Below the pieces are notes generated by a model. That model was not told the DNA's origin and ran no database searches. It saw only the letters and a list, made by a program, of their open reading frames with translations. A stretch of DNA of 62,554 nucleotides, filler included, from Choristocarpus tenellus KU-1152 (taxonomy: Eukaryota > Protista > Phaeophyceae): the NCBI GenBank assembly GCA_964200185.2. It is 13 parts of 13 records of this genome, joined end to end, with 100 filler letters (N's around TTAATTAATTAA, not from the genome) between each part and the next. Parts side by side here need not be neighbours in the genome. Positions count along the whole stretch, not along the records: positions 37,231 to 45,428 come from CAXNAD020005010.1; 12 more parts are not named here. One strand, written 5' to 3'. Shown piece after piece: positions 2,032-45,528 of this stretch. A program made the translations under genes and the position numbers. Numbering within the stretch: position 1 is the first letter of the stretch; each line of letters opens with the position of its first letter.

Positions 2032-3238
2032 CCGTTCACTTTCACCTTACGTTGTGGTACCACCACCATCACGGCTGACATATTGCCTGAAGACAAGTCG
2101 CCTTCAGCGTGGAGCTGGACCCAAAAGATTCACAAACCCGTTAACTACACTAGCCTCGATACCATACACACAGGCTTTGATGAAGCTTGGGTATATCTAC
2201 CACTCAATATTGAACATATTTTCGCCCTATATATGCGTTGGAGGTTTGTTCCGGATTCCGATATATTGTTGTTGTTGTGGACTTAAACTAAGGCTTATGT
2301 AAGCACCAGGGCGCAAGGTGAGCCCTCGTCACCTTGTTCGTCTATGCTATGCCAATGCTGAAGGGGTACATAGAGTAGGAGAGCCTTCCCTTCTCGTGAA
2401 TGCAACCCTGGTTTGGATTGGCTTGGGGCCCATGCACTAAGTGACAGAGATCGATTCATTGTCACCCTCTTGCAATGCATTCAAACATTTATTCCCCATA
2501 GATGTGTAAAAGGTTGGTCACACACAAGTTCCCGTGTACTCCAAATATTACGCAGCTTTCACATCTTCGAAGTATTACTCTCACACACACTCTTCACGCC
2601 CGGGTAGGTCTATATTATTGTCGCCATACTGTAACACCGAATCGCCAACCCTTGCAACATTTCTTGATTTTAAGATATTTTGAATTGAAAAAAGACCAAG
2701 GAAGCTACGCTGTGAGGGATACTCTATGATGTTTCCAACAATGTACAGGCCTTCAAAGGCTCGTCAACAACCAACCCATACCAGCATCTTCTCCCAAGCT
2801 TTAGGTCCCTCAAAAATCCCAGGCAAGGTAATCTGTCTTGGATGCTAGGGAGAGGAAGTACAATCTGCAATGGCACCAGGGCTGAGATGGACACAGGCTC
2901 AAAGTAACTGGGGGGGGGGGGGGGGGGGGGCCAACACCAGGGAGATTTGTGCCCGCTTTTGACAAAACGATTATAAATATTTTTCGACACACCNNNNNNN
3001 NNNAATGAACACAGGAGAGGGGGAGGGAAGAAGAGAGAGAACACAGGAGGGTGGGGGGGGGGGCGGGGGGAGGGGGGTCTACACCAGGGTGATTCGGTCC
3101 CTGATCAGGAAAAGTGCACTTAAATTATCCATCCGACGCATGCAACAAAATCACCCAAAAATCATGACATGGAAAAATGAACCCTGAATGGGCAGCCATC
3201 ACCCTCCCCCAGATACTTTGAGTCATAGTATTGGTTCG

Positions 3239-3282
<44 letters not shown>

Positions 3283-4896
3283 GTGCTTCTGATTCTAAAC
3301 CCATGAACCTCTTGTTTTCTATCTCATTGATCCGCCGCCAATATAGTGTCGTTACTGTTCTAAATCCTGACGTGTATCATATTGCTCAACTGATAGACAC
3401 ACTCTTACTCTTATTGTTGTTGTTTGTGTATGTGTACATATTTGTTAAACGTTTGATGGGCGGTGCAAGGGTGCATATTTCAATTGTTTCTTTTACAATG
3501 TTATGTGCTTTTCTCACCCTCTTGACAAGACAATGACCCCCCTGGCTAGCCAATATTACCTTCCACCAATGGGTGACATACACCTATGCCTCCAATGTCA
3601 AGTTTTGTAAATGGGCGTCCAGAGAGGTGGTGAGGATTGCTGTCATCCTCCCAACTGGCCTTCAGGTGAGTCTCTACATGCTAGACTCTCTGCAAAGATG
3701 GCGCACCACAAGAGTATTATTTTGAGTACATGGTTGATGCGGTAGTATATTACTGTGAATGGACTCATAATAGGTTAGTATGTCCCTGGACAATGGTGCC
3801 ATGAAGGAGGCTTTACAGGAGATAAAACCATACTACAAGTAATTAAATTTATACATACTCCAGAGCGTATGTAATTAAGGCGATCCTGCACGTAACACCA
3901 TTCTCCAACATCAATTCACTATCTTATCAAGCCCCACACACCCCTTCCTACCTGGGCACTTGGTTAATCCACAAGTATCAATTTCAGCCAACCTCCTCAA
4001 TATTGTAGGCAAAATGAGGCACCTTGTGGATAAAGCCTTCAGAAAGGCTGGGCATGCCAGAACAGGGCATGTGTCAGGATGCAGACGGTCACTGATCAAC
4101 AATGGGAGAGAGCTTCCTGACACTCAGGTCCTTTGGTACTGTGATAGAAGGGATCGAAGCAACCTTATCATTAGCTACCGCTGGTAAGAGAACAGACTTT
4201 GCATTCTTGATGTCTGAGGGCAATCAAACCACTAGTAGAGTGAGAAAAAGACTAGCACCATTGCTAGTGATTTCGTTAGAGGGGGAGGAAAGTGACTCCA
4301 TCTGGTCACCTCATGATGAGGTTGTGGCTAGTCAAGGTGCCCGAAAAAGGTACACATCTCATCTTGGAACACTGACAAAGAGGATCGACTTTGGATAGTT
4401 ATCTATCCAGCATGTGTCTCTGCTCCTTAGGTTGAACAGTCAATAACACACTTTTGAAGTAGTGCTACAGGCACAATATGAACAACCCTATGGCAATCTC
4501 TCGATACCCCTTACCCACAATTGCAACATCACTAGATGTACATCACCTCCTGAGCTATCCTTTCTTAGAGGGGGATGTCGTTGAGTATTTGGGGTCCTTC
4601 CGACTCCCTTCTGGTGCATGTGCTTCCACCACCCTGAAGAGCAATTTTGCACTCGGGTGGACAAACGTTTTGTCTCCTCATCTACAGCCACGACCTCCTA
4701 CAAGGGGAGTCAAATACATTTCAGCTATGGGAATGGGGTGTCAGATGGGAGGTTGAAGTTAAAAAATTTCAGAATTGACCAAAATGGACTCCCCTCTTTT
4801 ACAGAGTGGCTCACTTATGATATGGATCATTTCTTTAGTACCCAGGCACAGTATTGGAACATAGACATTTCTGACACTGAGATGCTTGGTGTGTGA
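2032..4896 (+). CDS. Putative spliced gene of unknown function (3' part)
   Basis: Open segments with plausible AG/GT boundaries at ~2032-2190 (PFTFTLRCG...GFDEAW), ~2720-2825, ~3530-3665 (NDPPWLANITF...PTGLQ|gtgagt) and ~4689-4896 (…WNIDISDTEMLGV*). No domain recognised. Confidence 0.35.
2896..3224. mobile_element. MITE family B/C ends spanning a gap
   Basis: GGCTCAAAGTAACTGGGGG at 2896 and CCCCCAGATACTTTGAGTC ending at 3224; the body 3073-3224 matches 10975-11128. Confidence 0.7.
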
Positions 4897-36099: not shown

Positions 36100-38254
36100 C
36101 TGGGAGGTGATTAAACAACCGGGTAAGGAATACGAGTCAGGGGCGGAAATAGGCCTATAAACCATCTTCGTACAGTTATCATAGTTTTAGCAAAAATTCA
36201 AGTATTTATAGTTGCCATCACTTGCTCGTAAAAGTGACAAATTTGCTCCCCCTAGAACATGTGACAGATATCTCTGGTACGGCTCTAATTTTGTGCAACA
36301 CATCCACATATTCTACATATCTCTGACAAATTTGTGGATGTTACTCATCCCTTCGTTAGATCTCATCCTCAAACCTTTCCGGTTCATCCCGTTGACTCAA
36401 CAGGACGAAATCAACTGGCTCACCCCTGTCTCCTCTTGTCTTAGGTAGTGAAGAAGGATGTGCGTAGTGCTTGTGATCTGTCCTCGGGAGCTACAAGGTG
36501 ACTCAACAATGTCAATGTACTATCAACAGATGGGGACTACTATGCTGTCCACCCATAGGAAACCAGCCGACAGTGGTCTCTATGTGATTTTTGCAGAGAT
36601 GGTCAAAAGGATCTGTGCTGTAATCCATCCTTCCAAGGTACACCGGAGCTCAAGCAGGACATTACCTTAGGTCTTCAAATATGTTACACATTCAAGGGTG
36701 TAGAGTAGAGTAGAGTATTAGCAATGCCAACAAACGGCATCCTTAGTACTCACGCCAATTTGCATAAAGTAAGGTCAACACAAATTTTGAGTGAGGTGTT
36801 GGATGCATACCTTCTGACACGCAGTAGAGGGAGTCAGTAAGTCAATGCCCGTGTACTCAAAGGGGCTAGAATTCCTCAAGAAGGAAACTAGAGTGGAAAC
36901 AACGGAGCACTCCGTGATGCAAGAGCTTCTAATTCAGTGTTATATATACTAGAGTACACAATTCACACCCTCCCTGAATTTCGAGGAACACAGTAGGTTG
37001 AAATTCATGAGGCAAAATAGTGTAACTATGGACAATTCTGACTTGAAAGTGTCAAATTTAGCATTCACTTAGAGGTGACTTGTAGATGTCTGGAACTGTT
37101 TCACATCTGGGTCAAAGTATCTTGGGGGGGNNNNNNNNNNNNNNNNNNNNNNNNNNNNNNNNNNNNNNNNNNNNTTAATTAATTAANNNNNNNNNNNNNN
37201 NNNNNNNNNNNNNNNNNNNNNNNNNNNNNNGTCCCAAGTCAATGGGATTGGTCACATGAAGAACTTCCATGGTTTCATTCTAACGGAAAAGTCCGTCAGT
37301 GAAATCATGGACTCTTGACCGGGAACCTCACTCGGTACCACGGTATAACGGTATAACAGTATATGGCATACGAGCAGTACGGTATAATAACAGACAAACA
37401 TGCTTTCCACAATTGTTGTCCTTTATGTCCTGGATTCCTTGTCTGGAGTATGGAGAAAGTTCGTCCTCTTTTTTAAGACAAGTCAAACACATTTAATGTA
37501 TGTTTGTGTAGGTAAGACAAGAGACACTTTATTATTTTTTTTGTCCTAGATGTTAACTATATCTTTCTATGATCATTTTTGTGCTAGATTCGAGTAACAG
37601 GGGGGTTTAGTTGAGGAGTGTGAAGAAGTACGTTTAGGTTTAGTTGAGGAGTGTGAAGAAGTACCATCGATCGTATTGGAATGAATTTAATCTGAATCGC
37701 AGATCTAAGTGAACTCCACAACATTGTGACTTGTACAACAAATGGGCTACGAATTCTCAGAATATCTCAAGTTGACGTTGATGTAGACGTCAATAATAAT
37801 TTGGAAATATGTTAGGAATATACTTGTGAGATGTACATGAGATCTGGTTAAACCTTACTTGTTATCGTTCATAAAATATAGGAAAAACATTTGTTTTCGT
37901 TCAAACATGTTCATTGAGAATCATTTTCATTTTATTTTTTCCAACAGAATTTCATTGATTGATGGATAGACTTTTGGACATATTGACGAAATTATTTTTA
38001 TGGTGTTAATATCTTCTATATATATGTCATTCAACTACAACAATAGTTTACAGTAGAAACTCATATCAGATCAACAATATATGAATGGTTCAACCAATCA
38101 GATTATCTTAAATCGACACTCCTTCCACTTCACCTGACACATGAAACTTGACATCATAGTGCACACATCAAAAACTTTGCATCAACCATAAAGCTCCTTC
38201 ACTAATCATCATTTCCTTCCTTTGTAGTAAGTTGACATTTCAGACTTGAGGATC

Positions 38255-41200
38255 ATGGATAGGAAATCCCTAAGAGGACAGAGGAGGGTAAGTGTTTGCA
38301 ACCACCTGCGTAGGGTTGTGGTATGGTGATTACTGACGTTTGCTCTCCTCATTCTCCTGTTGCCTCCCGTTCGAGATAGGGTAAAGTTGAAACTTCCCTT
38401 CCTCACTATATTGTACAATCTTTCCTCTCGCCCCCTTGCGCATCATATCAACAGCACCATAATGAGCAAACCGCACCATGCGACTCTCGCAAGCAACTAT
38501 TGGAGTTCGAATCATCTGAGCGTGTCGACCCTGAGCAAGATACAGGACATGTGTTTGTTCTCCAGTGTCAATGTGAGGGTGTTGCAGCCGATGCTTGTCT
38601 GACTGTGGCCCTAGAGAATGGAGAGATGGTTCCGTGCAACATCGATAGCACGGAAGACCAGGTCTGGCTAGCCCCAGAAAAGGAAGCGGAAGAAATCGAC
38701 GATGCATTGGTCACCCCCACGACAGTCGTATATGTGGGCAACCTTGGGGCACCAAATGGTGTCAAGAATCAAACAGAGGCTGCAAAGGCCGTCGTCAGCG
38801 TTGTAGAGAAGTTTTTCAAGCTCGTTGGTGACCAGTTCAAGGGCGAGTGGTCCAACTTCTCACGGAAGAAACCTTTGGTGAGCTATGTATGTTCGTAGAG
38901 CGTTCTTTCGAAGAATCAATCGTAAACTTTGTAGGAAGTCTACTCTGCTTTTCGGTGTTGCATGTAGAATGTTTCGCGCTGCAATATATTGTTATCGCGA
39001 AGCTTCGGGTGTCTCGTTCGACTTCGTATTAAACCATGTCTGATGGACCGTTTGTATCCCCTCGGACTTTTCCTTGTTTGTAAATTGATACCTCCAGGTG
39101 GCCATGCCGTTCCCGTGCAACGACGAAACACTCTCTGACGACATTGTGGTGACATTGCTACCGGTCATTTACCGTGCTGCCGAGACCTACCAACTGGACT
39201 TTGCTCTATGTACCCCAAACAAGGTCCACTACACTCTTCTCCAGATATTCAGGTACAAGCAACTGCGTTTCTTCACTGTTGCGATATGTATCACGTGAAG
39301 GTTACCTCTAGTGGCAGTAAATATCAGCTTTAATTAACATGCAGGTATAGCTTAGAGTACGAAAAAAAGATTTGGTGGCAACTGAAGGTGTGGGAAGAAG
39401 CAAGTTAGTTCGATCTTAGTCTTTCAATGTCGACACAATAGGTAATGTTGCAATGTACGGAGGCACTCGTATATACCCTTTAGAGCATTGCAATGTAGTT
39501 GGTTACTAGGTTCTCTGCTGAATTATACGTATGGTATATTCTTGGCAGAGGAATGCAGCCGTTACTCAGAGTACATAGTTTCTTCCTGTTCCACCAGCCA
39601 GCTGCCCATATCTCTTCCTACATTCACCATACAACATATTGCAACTGTTTATTTCTGTCCTACATCACTGGAATATCTCTTTATTATCTGCTAACCATAA
39701 ATGTGCTGCAGAGATGACCTGTGTCCATGGAATGATGGTCCATTTTGGATGGTCTCAGATGATCTTATGGAAGTTGCCAAGGATTTAGCAGCCATAGCAA
39801 AAGAGGGAATGCTTGTCACCTTCTTCGGTGCTGGTGTTAGCTATTGCGCTGGAGCTCCATCGTGGTCAGGACTTCTGCAGGTCAGAACAGTAAATGTTAT
39901 CTCACACTTTTGAGTGGTAAAACAAGTTACAAACATTGTTGGGTCGCTTAAATTTCTCATACACAGTATTCTTACGCCTTGGCAGTTACAGAGTATCAGT
40001 CTGGAGGTTGCTGAGTGCATTTTTTCTGAATCGTGGGTGGAAGGTGGACAGTCATTGAGGTAAAGGACACAGCAGTAGGAAGTCAAGCAACAGGGCCTAT
40101 GGTTGTTGGAGAGCATCAAATATGTAAGTGCATGATACGTATGACTTGCTCTGGTACCTTGCCAACCTTTTGATTTGTGTTGTGCTATAATGTACTTATA
40201 TATTGGATATATACAGTACTTGGCAAAGCAGGCAGGCTTCAGTGACACTCAATGTGAGGATCTGACTGGACTGGACTACCTGGACCAGGCCACTCTACTT
40301 GAGAAATCCTTCCCTGGTGACGAATTCAAGACCCAGGTCAGTAAGCAACTAAATGTGCCAGTTAGTAACTCAAATGAGCCAGCTCTTAAAATGAATAGGG
40401 ATGGCTGTATGGCCAGCGATTTTGCCAGCTGATATCTACATAAATATTTATCAGCTTCACATACATTGAATTGTTTATGGGTTTGGAATCTAGCTAGTGA
40501 GCTGGTTATTTAACACTTCTTGCATGCTTGAGAGTCTCATACATAAAAATTGTGTGCTAACGCCCTGAATAGCAACAGGATACAGTTGGCAATATGAGGC
40601 CGCTTGTGTGAAACTCGAGATCGGGACAGTGGGGCTTCCACAAGAGGGATTTGGACATCCTCTATACAGTGTGGATAAGTGATGAGTGTAGTTGCATAAC
40701 CCATCTCCACCACACAAGGCGAATACAAGCTTATCAAATACATTCAAAATCAGTAAATGACTTTAAAAAAAAACAGTCAAAAAATTGACAAAAGAACCAA
40801 GAGTGTAGGGTTTGAACTTGTGGCAGTATTGTTTGGTGTACAATATCTCTGTTGTGAGTCTCTGTTGTGAGTACCTGCTTACTGATCCAACCATATGTCA
40901 ACCTTCAGTACCCCCATGCTCTGTGCATCACCTTTCCTCTGCCACCTACAGATTGCTAATGCTGTAGATGCGGAACAATTTACTCCACACCACTCCTTGC
41001 TAGCTACCCTGGGTTGCCAATCTATCACAACAAACTACGATTCCTTGTTTGAGGCTGCTGCAAAGAGCGGTGGCGATGAGGTTATTGTCTTGCCACAGCA
41101 GGTTGAAAAGTGAGTTACTATATTTTGAACAAATTTTTATCTGCAGACCAACTTTGTGTGCGTTTGTGGAAAGATCATGATGCCTACATTGGATCATTAG

Positions 41201-43563
41201 ATAGAAACAGTAGCGTAAGGGCAGACCGAGTTATGACAAATGAACTGGACTTGTGAAGATCATTACATTAACTGCCATTATTACTCTATGTTCAGTTCAT
41301 CTGCATTGCTGAAATGCAGACAGGTCTGTACGCCTCAGTATATCACTTGTAAGAGTTTTAACCGCAAGGGGATTAAGGGACACATGTAATGCGTTAACAC
41401 TTTTTTGGGGGTTACATATATCTTACCTTAAAACATGCTTTTCTTTTCTTTTTCCTCAAGTAAAAAAACTTAGCAGACTAATTCACTGAATAAAGCTCAT
41501 TGACAGTACCACATCAAGCATGTCATCCATACTCCGTATCATTCATAGTCCGATTGTTTTTTCTTTTGTCAATTTACTCAAAAGGGCGGGGGTTCAACCT
41601 GAGACCTTGGAAGGAGAGGATTGCCCTACCTGGCTGCTCAAGGTTCATGGGACAGTTGAAGACCCACCAAGCATTGTTCTTTCAAGGGAGGACTACATGC
41701 GGTGAGACCTTGATTGAGTTAAACTAGGCACACTAACCCCTTCGTTTCCACTGTAAAATTATTTGACAGGGCTTTACAATTGAATCCACTATTTCCTTCA
41801 TTGCTGAAACTCTTCCTGTGAAACCTTAATTTGTTGTTTCAGTTGGTCGGAGATAACAAGTCAGCGCTATTTTCATGTTCCATTACATTACCTGGGGAAT
41901 GACCAAAAGAACCAACGTAGTGTACCATATCTCAATTTTTTTTCGTAATTACGGTAACTAGCATTTGTAATTTTTCCGCAGGTATTACGCCAACAAGTCT
42001 GCTCTTTTGGGAATGGTTGCACATGAGATGATCGTCAGCCACGTCCTCATCCTGGGCTTCAGTATGACGGATACACACCTTCATGAGTCCATTGACACAG
42101 TGCGGCGTATATTGCCTAATGTTTGTGAGAGGAAACTTGGGACAATTGTTATGCTCAAGGTGAGGTTTCTTTCTTTGTAAGTACCTGTTTTGGCCTTCTG
42201 CTAGGTTTTGCTGAAATGTCTCCTTATGGATGTGTGGTTCCAAGTTCACGATAATCGTAATGTAATGTAGAGGGAAATGTAAGTAGGGAAGCGTTGGAAT
42301 AGCATCTTCAAAGATGTGTAAAGTGATCTATTTTCTTCAAATCAGCAGAAATTTTTATTTTTTGACACAAAGAGAGTGAAAACATTTTCATTAAGTTACA
42401 CAGCATAAATTATAATCTTTTCACTTTATTTTTCTAGAATATTTTCAATGTGTTGTTTTTAATGGGGTTGATATTTTGAGTTTTGTTCGTGATAGTTGGT
42501 CACAGTTTTCCAGTTTGGAGGTAATTGTCCATGTTCTGTGGCAAAAAAGGTAGTCAAATTCTGAAAATGTTCCTACATCCCTACCTCCCTGTACTCTGCA
42601 CCTGGCTGCAGGAGAATGCCATGTTCACAGCTCTCTGGGAGAAAGAGTTCAACGTTGTCTATATGGTGGACAAAGATGGATCTTCTTCTACTGGAGCGTG
42701 GTACCTTGATGCATTCATTGACTGCTTTGTCAACATGGTGCAAAGAAAGAGTCAGAGGTGAGTAGGGTGAATAGCCTACAGAGACACATTCTCTCGGAAC
42801 CTTTAGGGATGATGGGATTCAAGTTCTTTTCTTGTGTCCATAAATAAACCCCCTCTATTTCCCCTCAATTGATATCTAGGAAAGAATGTCCAAAAGTGCA
42901 GTTTGTCCATTCCACCTCAAAGAAGCTGCCGCCTCTTTGGTACTAGGAATTCCACTTAACTACACAACACACATAAATTGAACTTTACTTGTAAATAAAA
43001 AAGAGGAAATATTTCTCCCCCCCCGCCTTGAAAAGATTGGGTACACACTTTGTACAGTTTTGTGATCTTGAATGGTGCACGACCTGTCTCTAACTCTCCA
43101 TTGTCCTCCACATGTAATACGGCTTCCTAACCGTGGGATAAAATACAGGGGGCTTATTATGCACCCAAAGATGAGGGAGTTCTTCACTCCTGCACAGGAC
43201 ACGATGTTCAACAGTGTGAAAGAAATGTTGGCAACCATTGGTGAGCGTCCATCTGATGAGGATGGTGCTGCCATGTGGGACAGGCTTTACAGATTTGGGA
43301 AGGTGAGAACGCTCTTCAATAACTTGTGCTGTCCTTTACTATTGTTCTGAAAGCCAGGTGTGCTGACTACCCAAAATCCTAGGGTTGAGTTGAGTGAAGG
43401 TATGATTTACTCTGTCAAGGCTTACGTTTCGGTATATAAAATCATCCCTGCACACCTTGCTCACCACCTTCCTTGGTTGTCTTAATGGCCTGGACTTGTT
43501 TCTTCTTCTTCATACCACCAGAAACTTGGACTGGAGAAGAGCCTTCTTCCTTCCTCAGGTTGA
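38255..43563 (+). CDS. Macro-like plus SIR2_2 (defence-type sirtuin) protein, 11 exons, ~564 aa
   Basis: Exons 38255-38287, 38455-38877, 39098-39252, 39712-39880, 40217-40336, 40952-41109, 41585-41701, 41982-42159, 42612-42757, 43149-43302, 43522-43563. All introns are GT-AG, phases match, total 1695 nt. Motifs FFGAGVS…PSW, ITTNYD, LLKVHG…IVLSREDY, LGFSMTD. Confidence 0.88.
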
Positions 43564-45528
43564 CCAGATGTCGTCAATGAAGCAACCTGCACAGCACATC
43601 AAATAAAGACATTTTTGTCAAGGGGCACTGAAGTATATTGCTGTGTTGAATGGTTGACAAGATACGACTGATTTACTCACTGGCAATCACAAATCAACCT
43701 AAACTTTTGTAGCTCAATAGTCTTATGTCTGCGCCACAACATTGTGGAGGATTAGTAGTGGACATTGGCTGGATCTACATCTCTGAAGATCATATTGCTT
43801 GTGGATATCTGGGTGGGTAGGCCATGGTTCGCCCAGTCTGTTGTAGTGAAAAGGACAGTTTCTATTACTCTATTTGGGGCTGAGAGTTTTTCTAGCTAGA
43901 ATAGTTTCCTGCTGGTGTGAGGGAGATGTGTTGCTCCCAATTTTCCCATTTTGGGAAGGAAGTTTGTTCATTCTGGGTTGAAATTCTTTGTTTCTGTGTC
44001 TTTCTTTTAACTATCTCACTTCTTCACTCCTTCACTTCTGCACTGTAGGGCTTCGCTTTTTTTTCGTGACCTACACCTTACGGGTATTTTATTAATTGCT
44101 ATCAACCTTTCTTACTTTCATTGTGGGGCAAGGGTGTTCGAAACTTGACCTGCTATTGTAGTATGTCAGTTTCGTGTTTTGGATCGATAATGAATCTACT
44201 GGTGTTGACTTTGCTTTGATTTTGCAACAGTATGCCAAGCGTTGAGCGTGGGACTGATCTTTCCTCTTTTTTTATAGCGTTTTTCACAGTCCTTCAAGTC
44301 GAGTGACTGTGTGAGTATTTTGGTGGTTGGAATATTTGAATGATGCGTGTAAGAATCTGAAAGAGGGTAAAAAATGATCAATTTCTCAACCTTTCATAGG
44401 TAATAGAGTTTGCAAATAAGAAGCAATTTGTATATCATGCCCTCTTCAACAGAAGAATTTCCATTCCAGTATTTTGTTGAGTTTGTACTAGGTACCCGCA
44501 ACATCATCTTTGGTCAAGAAACGTTCACGATCACACATAAGTATACAAATAGACCAGGTAGATTTGAATTACGTATCAAGAACAAGTGTCACACACACAT
44601 CTTAGTGCAAATCTAATTCGAGCAACGATTTTTTACGCTAAGAATATTCAGGGTGAGAGACATAAAAGAAACAACTTTCAATCTGCATCAGAGCTAGAAC
44701 AAAGGGAACAAAAATTACCCCAAAAATAGCCCTCCTGTTAATGTGTTGATTCTTTACAAAGCATCACCTCTTCTACACTCTATTTTATTGCCTTCGTTTC
44801 CCTACATCTCTAGTTCTTAACAATGAAGAGTCTTCAACGAAGCAAGATTAATTCCTATTGACAGAGAAGCCTCGTTACATTCCTATATCTGCGATTTTCG
44901 GCCAGTAATTTTTCCATTTCATTCTTGTTACATCCGGTTCGGAATTAAATGTGACACAACTATTGCCCTCCAAAGAAGCAAGTTTTATTTCACATGTTCA
45001 TATTTTATTAGTGTATTGCGCAGACACTAAAGGGTTGCCAATCAAAATCTCAAAACAAAATGGAGCAGGTTACACCTATCTATGGCCCCACTCCCGAAAC
45101 CCTCCAAAATTCCTTTCTAGTATGTTGTTCCGCCGTATCCACAGGGTATTTGAGGGAAATTTGTCCACCTTCTCAGTTTTTTCCTTGCTAAGATGAATTT
45201 TGGAGGTATTGTCACCCTTGCTTCCCAGAACTTCACCGTACACTGTGAAGAGGCTTCTGCTAGACACATACACATTGATCGTGTCCATTGTGGCCTCCAC
45301 CAGGTTCTCAGTTGCCATCCTCACGCCTTGCTTCATTTGTGATCTGGCTATCACGATTCTTTAGATAACAGGGGAATCTCAAAATTGAGGAAGGCGCGGG
45401 ACTATGAGGATTGTTTATTTGTTAAAACNNNNNNNNNNNNNNNNNNNNNNNNNNNNNNNNNNNNNNNNNNNNTTAATTAATTAANNNNNNNNNNNNNNNN
45501 NNNNNNNNNNNNNNNNNNNNNNNNNNNN

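Follow-up and report, generated by a model that had tools for sequence, protein, structure and literature searches.

A spliced Macro-SIR2 gene from the brown alga Choristocarpus tenellus belongs to the eukaryotic clade C of immune-type SIR2 proteins

Bacterial-type SIR2 NADases, enzymes that cleave nicotinamide adenine dinucleotide (NAD+), now count among the immune effectors of bacteria and, via FAM118B, of mammals. Here we describe a gene for a protein of this type in the brown alga Choristocarpus tenellus KU-1152. It lies on the + strand at positions 38255-43563 of the window, the whole 62,554-nucleotide stretch of DNA that was analysed, which joins parts of 13 records of assembly GCA_964200185.2. 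The piece examined, 37231-45428 (record CAXNAD020005010.1), is the 8.2-kb contig of the gene and contains no second recognisable gene. This is an expressed, spliced nuclear gene of C. tenellus, and it encodes a three-part protein composed of a macro fold (residues ~38-216), a SIR2 domain of the ThsA/DSR type (SIRim, SIR2_2; ~222-462) and a conserved helical extension (463-551). The protein belongs to the eukaryotic clade C of SIRim proteins, a family already known by computation, so the locus adds a member and opens no new category. On balance, we favour the interpretation that this expressed Macro+SIR2 gene specifies an NAD+-cleaving, trigger-gated effector that would stop infected or stressed cells.

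Gene structure and transcription

Three-frame reading of the piece and joining of the coding stretches yielded 11 exons separated by 10 introns, all with GT..AG borders. The joined frame of 1695 nt was translated in script into 564 codons followed by TGA, with 0 internal stops; the 11 in-phase exons and the protein of about 564 aa proposed in the original prediction, which a model had made from the DNA, are thus reproduced. The intron phases, in order from 1 to 10, are 0, 0, 2, 0, 0, 2, 2, 0, 2 and 0, and the GC fraction is 0.50 in exons versus 0.40 in introns. An additional 60-nt candidate exon at 39344-39403 was dropped, as it brings in a stop, breaks the frame and is contradicted by spliced contigs.

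These contigs come from the RNA-like run X3 of one public study. They lack introns 2-10 and, once the known shift in the reported cut positions is allowed for, join the exons exactly at the modelled junctions, namely 38877|39098, 39252|39712, 39880|40217, 40336|40952, 41109|41585, 41701|41982, 42159|42612, 42757|43149 and 43302|43522, so that 9 of the 10 introns are skipped where the model places them. The k-mer depth in X3 is 500-870 in exons versus 2-50 in introns. Because the runs consist of contigs, strand and expression level cannot be read from them. In run X1 of the same study, probably the source of this DNA, the locus lies within one 8002-nt contig.

Exon 1 (38255..38287) provides the ATG and 11 codons (MDRKSLRGQRR), identical to the start of the public protein record P0001, and joins exon 2 in phase 0 through a GT donor at its 3' end. 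Exon 2 (38455..38877) encodes residues 12-152, 100% identical to P0001, which comprise a disordered leader and the bulk of the macro-like domain, including GHVFV. The remainder of that domain is encoded by exon 3 (39098..39252), with a degenerate loop, PFPCNDE, and the stretches LLPVIYRAA and LDFALC. Exon 4 (39712..39880) carries the linker and the start of the SIR2 domain, with the NAD-binding motif FFGAGVS at 39827-39841, and exon 5 (40217..40336) carries a helical SIR2 insert with LDYLDQA. The SIR2 core is distributed over exon 6 (40952..41109), with TTNYD at 41027-41041 and the catalytic Asn328; exon 7 (41585..41701), with LLKVHG at 41640-41651, the catalytic His374 and IVLSREDY; and exon 8 (41982..42159), with GFSMTD at 42055-42072. 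Exon 9 (42612..42757) completes the SIR2 domain and begins the C-terminal helical extension (LW...AWYLDAFID), which continues in exon 10 (43149..43302), a part kept in bacterial and algal homologues. Exon 11 (43522..43563) supplies the last 13 codons, KLGLEKSLLPSSG, and TGA.

All motifs quoted in the original prediction were found, in the order given there. By residue number they are GHVFV 42-46, PLVAMP 151-156 and LLPVIYRAA 172-180 in the N-terminal half; GAGVS 243-247, LDYLDQA 279-285, HSLLATL 314-320, TTNYD 326-330 and KVHG 372-375 in the SIR2 half; and IVLSREDY 383-390, GFSMTD 417-422 and AWYLDAFID 480-488 further towards the C-terminus. The description of the gene as fully intronised likewise agrees with the ten introns and their removal in the X3 contigs.

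The gene is already present in public annotation as P0001, a 566-aa "unnamed protein product [Choristocarpus tenellus]" on the 8198-nt contig that corresponds to the present piece. When exon 2 was searched exhaustively with phmmer, this record and one 209-aa fragment were the only matches. P0001 and the spliced model are identical over residues 1-551 and differ in their tails: the record ends in VRTLFNNLCCPLLLF, from read-through of the donor at 43302, and the last exon of the model gives KLGLEKSLLPSSG (window 43303-43563). The last exon of the public annotation looks wrong, as the X3 contigs back the junction 43302|43522 at a depth of 751. P0001 served as the reference in the full-length analyses below and the exons were searched individually; the joined translation was used for the frame check and the comparison with the record.

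SIR2 domain and C-terminal extension

P0001 matches the Pfam SIR2_2 profile (PF13289) over residues 325-461 with 81.5 bits (8.2e-23; cut-off 24.5) and the PADLOC ThsA1 profile at 5e-25. The individual exons give collinear matches to the same profiles: exons 6, 7 and 8 correspond to SIR2_2 positions 4-28, 37-63 and 67-111, and exons 4, 6 and 7 match ThsA1, exon 4 at positions 8-44. The best sequence relatives in the PDB are ThsA (7uxt, 5.8e-14; 6lhx, 3.5e-12), KomC and DSR2. Residue for residue, TTNYD of exon 6 aligns with TTNYD of the solved relatives, ThsA included, and KVHG of exon 7 with their K[LM]HG (KMHG in ThsA). Matches of single short exons to TAL effectors and designed TIM barrels in the PDB are repeat-protein artefacts and were ignored.

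A full-length AlphaFold model built from a 30-sequence alignment reached a predicted local distance difference test score (pLDDT) of 82 and a predicted template modelling score of 0.83; ThsA, KomC and DSR2 rank at the top of its Foldseek matches, and the C-terminal extension is modelled as helices at 476-557. The residues that are invariant across the 30 family members include G243, G245, N328, D330, H374, G417, D422 and D488. No CxxC occurs anywhere in the protein, and P0001 matches neither the classical sirtuin profile PF02146 nor STALD/SLOG. Based on the profile matches, the solved relatives, the Foldseek ranking and the invariant residues, the SIR2 part is an intact SIR2_2 domain of the zinc-less kind found in antiphage proteins. 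The assignment of the C-terminal half to this type, the presence of the catalytic Asn and His (N328 and H374, aligned with the ThsA positions) and the missing zinc module had all been anticipated from the DNA.

N-terminal macro-like domain

The N-terminal domain (residues 38-216) was modelled with AF2 from an alignment of 29 homologous segments, with a pLDDT of 83. Foldseek retrieved almost solely macrodomains or constructs derived from them, among which are alphavirus nsP3, YmdB, MACROD2 and PARP9/14, and VIA-align superposed the entire domain on macrodomains with a Z score of 13.5 and a root-mean-square deviation of 3.1-3.5 Å over 144-147 of its 179 residues. At the sequence level, a profile of the segments matches macroH2A1.1 (4e-5) and TTHA0132 (4.5e-4), and in this alignment "GDLT..(A/C)DA..(P)T" corresponds to the macro strand and "A.P..G.G.GG" to the macro phosphate loop. 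Taken together, these results indicate that the earlier description of this half as macro-like is right at the level of the fold, and the domain is predicted to be a three-layer alpha/beta/alpha macro fold.

The resemblance was visible in structure and in the segment profile. The N-terminal domain is silent in Pfam, PADLOC and single-sequence PDB searches, exon 2 alone has no match in Pfam, PADLOC, PDB or ESM Atlas features, and a word-based search with the region returned its own protein only.

Relatives in eukaryotes and bacteria

Relatives that share all three parts of the protein form a sharply bounded set, with scores of at least 408 bits versus at most 172 bits for proteins sharing the SIR2 domain only. 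Those in named eukaryotes come from Discosporangium mesarthrocarpum, the diatom Skeletonema japonicum and the amoebozoan Rhizamoeba saxonica; a whole-family profile search found no further full-length members, and only two brown-algal species carry the gene in the protein search. The Discosporangium orthologue is 61% identical and has the same exon boundaries, and these shared intron positions point to an ancestor of the two Discosporangiales genera in which the gene already had introns. Although this orthologue is annotated as a 446-aa protein without the macro half, an unannotated upstream exon at L013:9442-9843 is 36% identical to Choristocarpus residues 22-155, GHVFIL included. A scan of IMG/VR gave SIR2-domain matches only and no Macro-SIR2 fusion.

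In bacteria, one genome per species was scanned for relatives carrying [VI]TTNYDx[LA][FY]E. A relative was found in 512 species representatives, nearly all of the best 80 being full length, from the phyla Myxococcota, Actinomycetota, Planctomycetota, Chloroflexota and others. ESM Atlas neighbours are concordant, and in one actinobacterial cluster 99% of the proteins carry Pfam Macro. The Macro+SIR2 family is therefore widespread as a stand-alone bacterial gene, and the layout of bacterial single-gene proteins, invoked in the original prediction, is collinear with the algal protein over ~40-550.

The eukaryotic family has been described by Bonhomme et al. (bioRxiv 10.1101/2024.09.18.613514), who defined the immune-type "SIRim" domain and sorted its eukaryotic carriers into five clades. 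Their clade C, SIRim+Macro, comprises 83 species and is the broadest eukaryotic SIRim branch reported; it branches with ThsA-like proteins, and its members in their Table S4 include red and green algae, haptophytes, diatoms and many Amoebozoa. The Skeletonema relative (P0008) is EP00574_Skeletonema_japonicum_P006793, labelled clade C in that table. The Choristocarpus protein has the clade C architecture of SIRim plus Macro, or SIR2_2 in Pfam terms, with the Table S4 signatures GHVF[VIL]L, GPFWM and TTNYD in common, and it falls in a 100/100 clade with P0008 in our 40-row tree; it belongs to clade C. Table S4 contains no brown alga (Phaeophyceae, Ectocarpus, Choristocarpus and Saccharina, 0 entries each). 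The present locus adds a brown-algal member whose gene model is checked against transcripts and whose last exon is corrected.

In a 40-row tree, Choristocarpus and Discosporangium form a pair (100/100) inside a larger clade, also with 100/100 support, whose eight sequences are from algal-type eukaryotes, Skeletonema among them; Rhizamoeba is placed elsewhere and the backbone did not resolve. The nearest relatives of the Choristocarpus protein are thus other eukaryotes, of algal type. In a quick tree with 61 bacterial rows added, the algal clade has a support of 100 and is joined to Actinomycetota at a Shimodaira-Hasegawa-like approximate likelihood ratio of 91 only. In an approximately unbiased test on 43 rows (LG+G4), a topology with all bacterial rows as one clade apart from the algal clade was not rejected (p 0.785). 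A bacterial origin of the gene is plausible in view of the phylogeny of Bonhomme et al. and because the fusion, like its SIR2 relatives, is spread far more widely in bacteria. The old horizontal transfer originally proposed is not supported in that form: bacterial counterparts do share the layout, but the protein sits in the algal clade of the published eukaryotic clade C and not directly within bacteria. The original interpretation was therefore right on architecture and family and overstated on horizontal transfer. Separately, two bacterial family open reading frames (L075 and L081) stand on a branch of length 9.25 in a 75-row tree, which probably reflects frame or calling errors of a crude extraction and not biology.

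Bacterial contamination of the assembly, or a very recent bacterial insertion, might be suspected from an 8.2-kb contig with no other recognisable gene. The chance of this is vanishingly small, and it is refuted by the ten spliceosomal GT..AG introns and by the removal of introns 2-10 in the X3 contigs. In addition, exon and intron GC (0.50 and 0.40) differ from that of the high-GC bacterial relatives, the Discosporangium locus adjoins genes for an RNA polymerase subunit and REX1B, and the nearest relatives are algal.

Bacterial gene neighbourhoods

Around named bacterial genes of the family, most of the loci inspected are defence islands, with restriction-modification systems, helicases, reverse transcriptase, phospholipase D-type (PLD) nucleases, toxin-antitoxin pairs and Dnd. 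The location of bacterial homologues in such islands, proposed earlier as a check, therefore holds for most loci inspected. All neighbours within 4 kb were clustered for 88 bacterial loci. No conserved partner gene emerged across them; the largest cluster, a protein kinase, is present at 9 of the 88, and the remaining clusters mostly reflect synteny among close relatives.

Genes of ADP-ribose modules flank the Macro-SIR2 gene at 13 of the 88 loci, some of which are closely related, so the independent associations are fewer. NrtR, a Nudix-type regulator of NAD metabolism, is found at eight (L002, L022, L036, L039, L045, L065, L067 and L082) and is directly adjacent in four. ADP-ribosylglycohydrolase (ARG) is found at five (L001, L002, L039, L040 and L067), ARPP-1 at five (L002, L029, L039, L040 and L047) and REase-ARP at one (L007). 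According to Iyer et al. (PMC9503650), ARG, ARPP and NrtR modules are components of ADP-ribose-centred systems predicted to be antiviral. This survey, with its 512 representatives, no conserved partner and NrtR, ARG or ARPP genes near a minority of the loci, helps to choose a tractable homologue for experiments.

The same neighbourhoods bear on a metabolic explanation, in which the protein would be an NAD/ADP-ribose metabolic or signalling enzyme acting in NAD homeostasis, with the macro-like domain binding the product for feedback. NrtR near eight loci and ADP-ribosylglycohydrolase near five would suit such a role, as would the housekeeping setting of one bacterial homologue and the transcription of the algal gene in a run without known infection. 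We nevertheless regard it as unlikely, since the closest solved or profiled relatives are all antiphage NADases and most inspected loci belong to defence islands, alongside genes for restriction, helicases, toxin-antitoxin pairs and Dnd. A patchy spread over eukaryotes and bacteria suits conflict genes better than core metabolism, and the nearby ARG, ARPP and NrtR modules are themselves predicted to be antiviral (PMC9503650).

On one metagenomic bacterial contig (L008), the Macro-SIR2 gene overlaps both neighbours (2-1327 and 2847-4070) by a few bases in an operon-like arrangement. Of the two neighbouring products, the upstream one carries cysteine-rich repeats resembling Stig1 and the downstream one is without a Pfam match; the arrangement does not recur at the other loci.

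Comparison with known systems

The closest counterparts outside eukaryotes are the bacterial Macro-SIR2 proteins annotated as "SIR2 family protein" in Serinibacter salmoneus, Arthrobacter sp., Polyangium spp., Gemmata and Rhodococcus. Their macro, SIR2 and C-terminal helical parts are collinear with the algal protein over ~40-550 at 25-31% identity, and all catalytic and NAD-binding residues are common to both. Unlike the Choristocarpus gene, they are intronless, keep the loop P-x-x-G-T-G-x-G-G and lie mostly in defence islands. We know of no phage-defence experiment on a bacterial stand-alone Macro-SIR2.

Among solved proteins, type I Thoeris ThsA (SIR2-SLOG; 6lhx, 7uxt, 8bto) is the best SIR2 match (E 6e-14 to 4e-11) and the top Foldseek match, with the Asn of TTNYD and the His of K-x-HG aligned. 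Its C-terminal SLOG domain senses 3'cADPR and it works with a neighbouring TIR gene, ThsB, whereas the Choristocarpus and bacterial Macro-SIR2 proteins have an N-terminal macro fold, no SLOG and no conserved TIR neighbour. Eukaryotic partner genes need not be linked. Type II Thoeris ThsA, a transmembrane+Macro protein that senses His-ADPR, resembles the family in joining a macro fold to an effector, a parallel drawn by Bonhomme et al. (bioRxiv 10.1101/2024.09.18.613514). The effector there is membrane-disrupting, in contrast to SIR2 here, and no TIR partner accompanies the present protein; the Pfam ThsA_Macro profile matches 1 of 29 family N-terminal domains, weakly and not significantly (E 0.03).

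Animal FAM118A/B (SIRanc, clade A SIRim) are likewise non-canonical SIR2_2-type proteins without a zinc module and related to antiphage SIR2. They belong to clade A and not to clade C, have no macro domain, are reported to act in mammalian TLR signalling and are absent from the sequence matches of the Choristocarpus protein. Classical sirtuin deacylases (PF02146) differ from the Choristocarpus protein, which has neither a match to their profile nor a zinc-binding module.

Proposed function

The working of such an effector can be outlined by analogy with ThsA, DSR2 and KomC. Once activated, the SIR2 domain would most likely cleave NAD+; it would probably stay switched off until a trigger reaches it via the N-terminal domain or by oligomerisation, and the loss of NAD+ would then halt the infected or stressed cell. 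Among the bacterial proteins, the macro domain with its intact glycine-rich loop could plausibly sense a ligand of the ADP-ribose type. In Choristocarpus the trigger is perhaps not the canonical ADP-ribose ligand, because that loop is eroded; an altered ligand, a protein trigger or a loss of gating would each be conceivable. From homology and bacterial context, we infer an immune role for the algal protein.

Several points weigh against this interpretation. The glycine-rich diphosphate-binding loop P-x-x-G-T-G-x-G-G of bacterial and amoebozoan members is partly kept in several other algae and lost in the diatom sequences; in Choristocarpus it has become PFPCNDE, with a 7-residue deletion, and the L-P-T-D that follows the conserved Asp has become LTVA. 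The adenine-side Asp, D57, is retained, and a 30-residue insert of low model confidence occupies residues 67-99. With both the loop and the PTD motif changed, ligand sensing in Choristocarpus may be lost or altered; an intact effector half is joined to a presumed sensor half that has diverged. The sensor-gated NADase envisaged in the original prediction thus keeps its macro fold and is weakened by the loss of the ligand loop. Furthermore, the Pfam Macro profile (PF01661), which the original prediction had named for a check, matches neither the protein nor any single exon. A signal-producing partner such as TIR is not conserved at the 88 bacterial loci, none of the annotated neighbour clusters being TIR, and one bacterial homologue lies amid housekeeping genes. 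Some SIR2-family enzymes transfer ADP-ribose instead of hydrolysing NAD+. Read support from X3 is missing for intron 1 and the start codon, as X3 depth is absent at 38200-38383. Finally, none of the papers searched names the Macro-SIR2 fusion, and enzymatic or infection data exist for no member, clade C having been described from computation alone.

The eroded loop, the low-confidence insert at 67-99 and the restriction to two brown-algal species in the protein search would also fit a decaying relic, in which the SIR2 domain is kept while the protein, having lost its regulated function, drifts in Discosporangiales. We consider this highly improbable, given a frame that is open over 11 exons, the retention of all invariant SIR2 residues, the Discosporangium orthologue with 61% identity and the same intron positions, and the spliced form that is well represented in RNA-like contigs.

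A different activity would follow if the protein were an ADP-ribosyltransferase acting on proteins, or a deacylase, and carried its own macro "eraser", similar to SirTM-macrodomain pairs; it would then not be a bulk NADase. Macro and sirtuin genes are reportedly paired in the SirTM systems of bacteria and fungi, as Rack et al. are said to have found in 2015. SIR2 domains may moreover serve as ADP-ribosyltransferases in biological conflicts (PMC9503650). This alternative is improbable: the domain is SIR2_2 and not PF02146, it has no zinc CxxC module, and eraser activity is unlikely because catalytic loop 1, which is rich in glycine, is missing from the macro domain, the family aligns with the non-hydrolytic macroH2A type and loop 2 is gone in Choristocarpus.

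An NAD+-cleaving, gated effector thus remains our preferred reading, and a more specific version of it can be formulated. Macro-SIR2 would be a self-contained, one-protein immune module, conserved from bacteria to algae. Its macro domain would respond to an infection cue of the ADP-ribose type, for instance the products of viral ADP-ribosylation or a diffusible signal derived from ADPR, and free the NADase; the Discosporangiales copy would be a working antiviral or anti-pathogen effector with its sensor loop re-tuned to another ligand or to a protein trigger. This version seems to us possible, if doubtful. The contrast between intact effector residues and an eroded macro ligand loop could be used in a bench test.

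Further observations at the locus

Within intron 9, at 42774-42823, one low-depth contig of the DNA run X2 has AGGGG instead of 48 nt, which may be an indel that differs between samples or, at a depth of 2, a fault of the assembly. Run X4 of the same study, labelled as another organism (B), contains three short pieces of the locus at 40994-41144, 41236-41386 and 42185-42401 with at least 99% identity, which could be carry-over between libraries or come from a very close relative. Upstream of the gene, ~600 nt before the start codon, the 28-nt sequence GGTTTAGTTGAGGAGTGTGAAGAAGTAC is present twice as an exact direct repeat, at 37604 and at 37637 (window 37604-37664).

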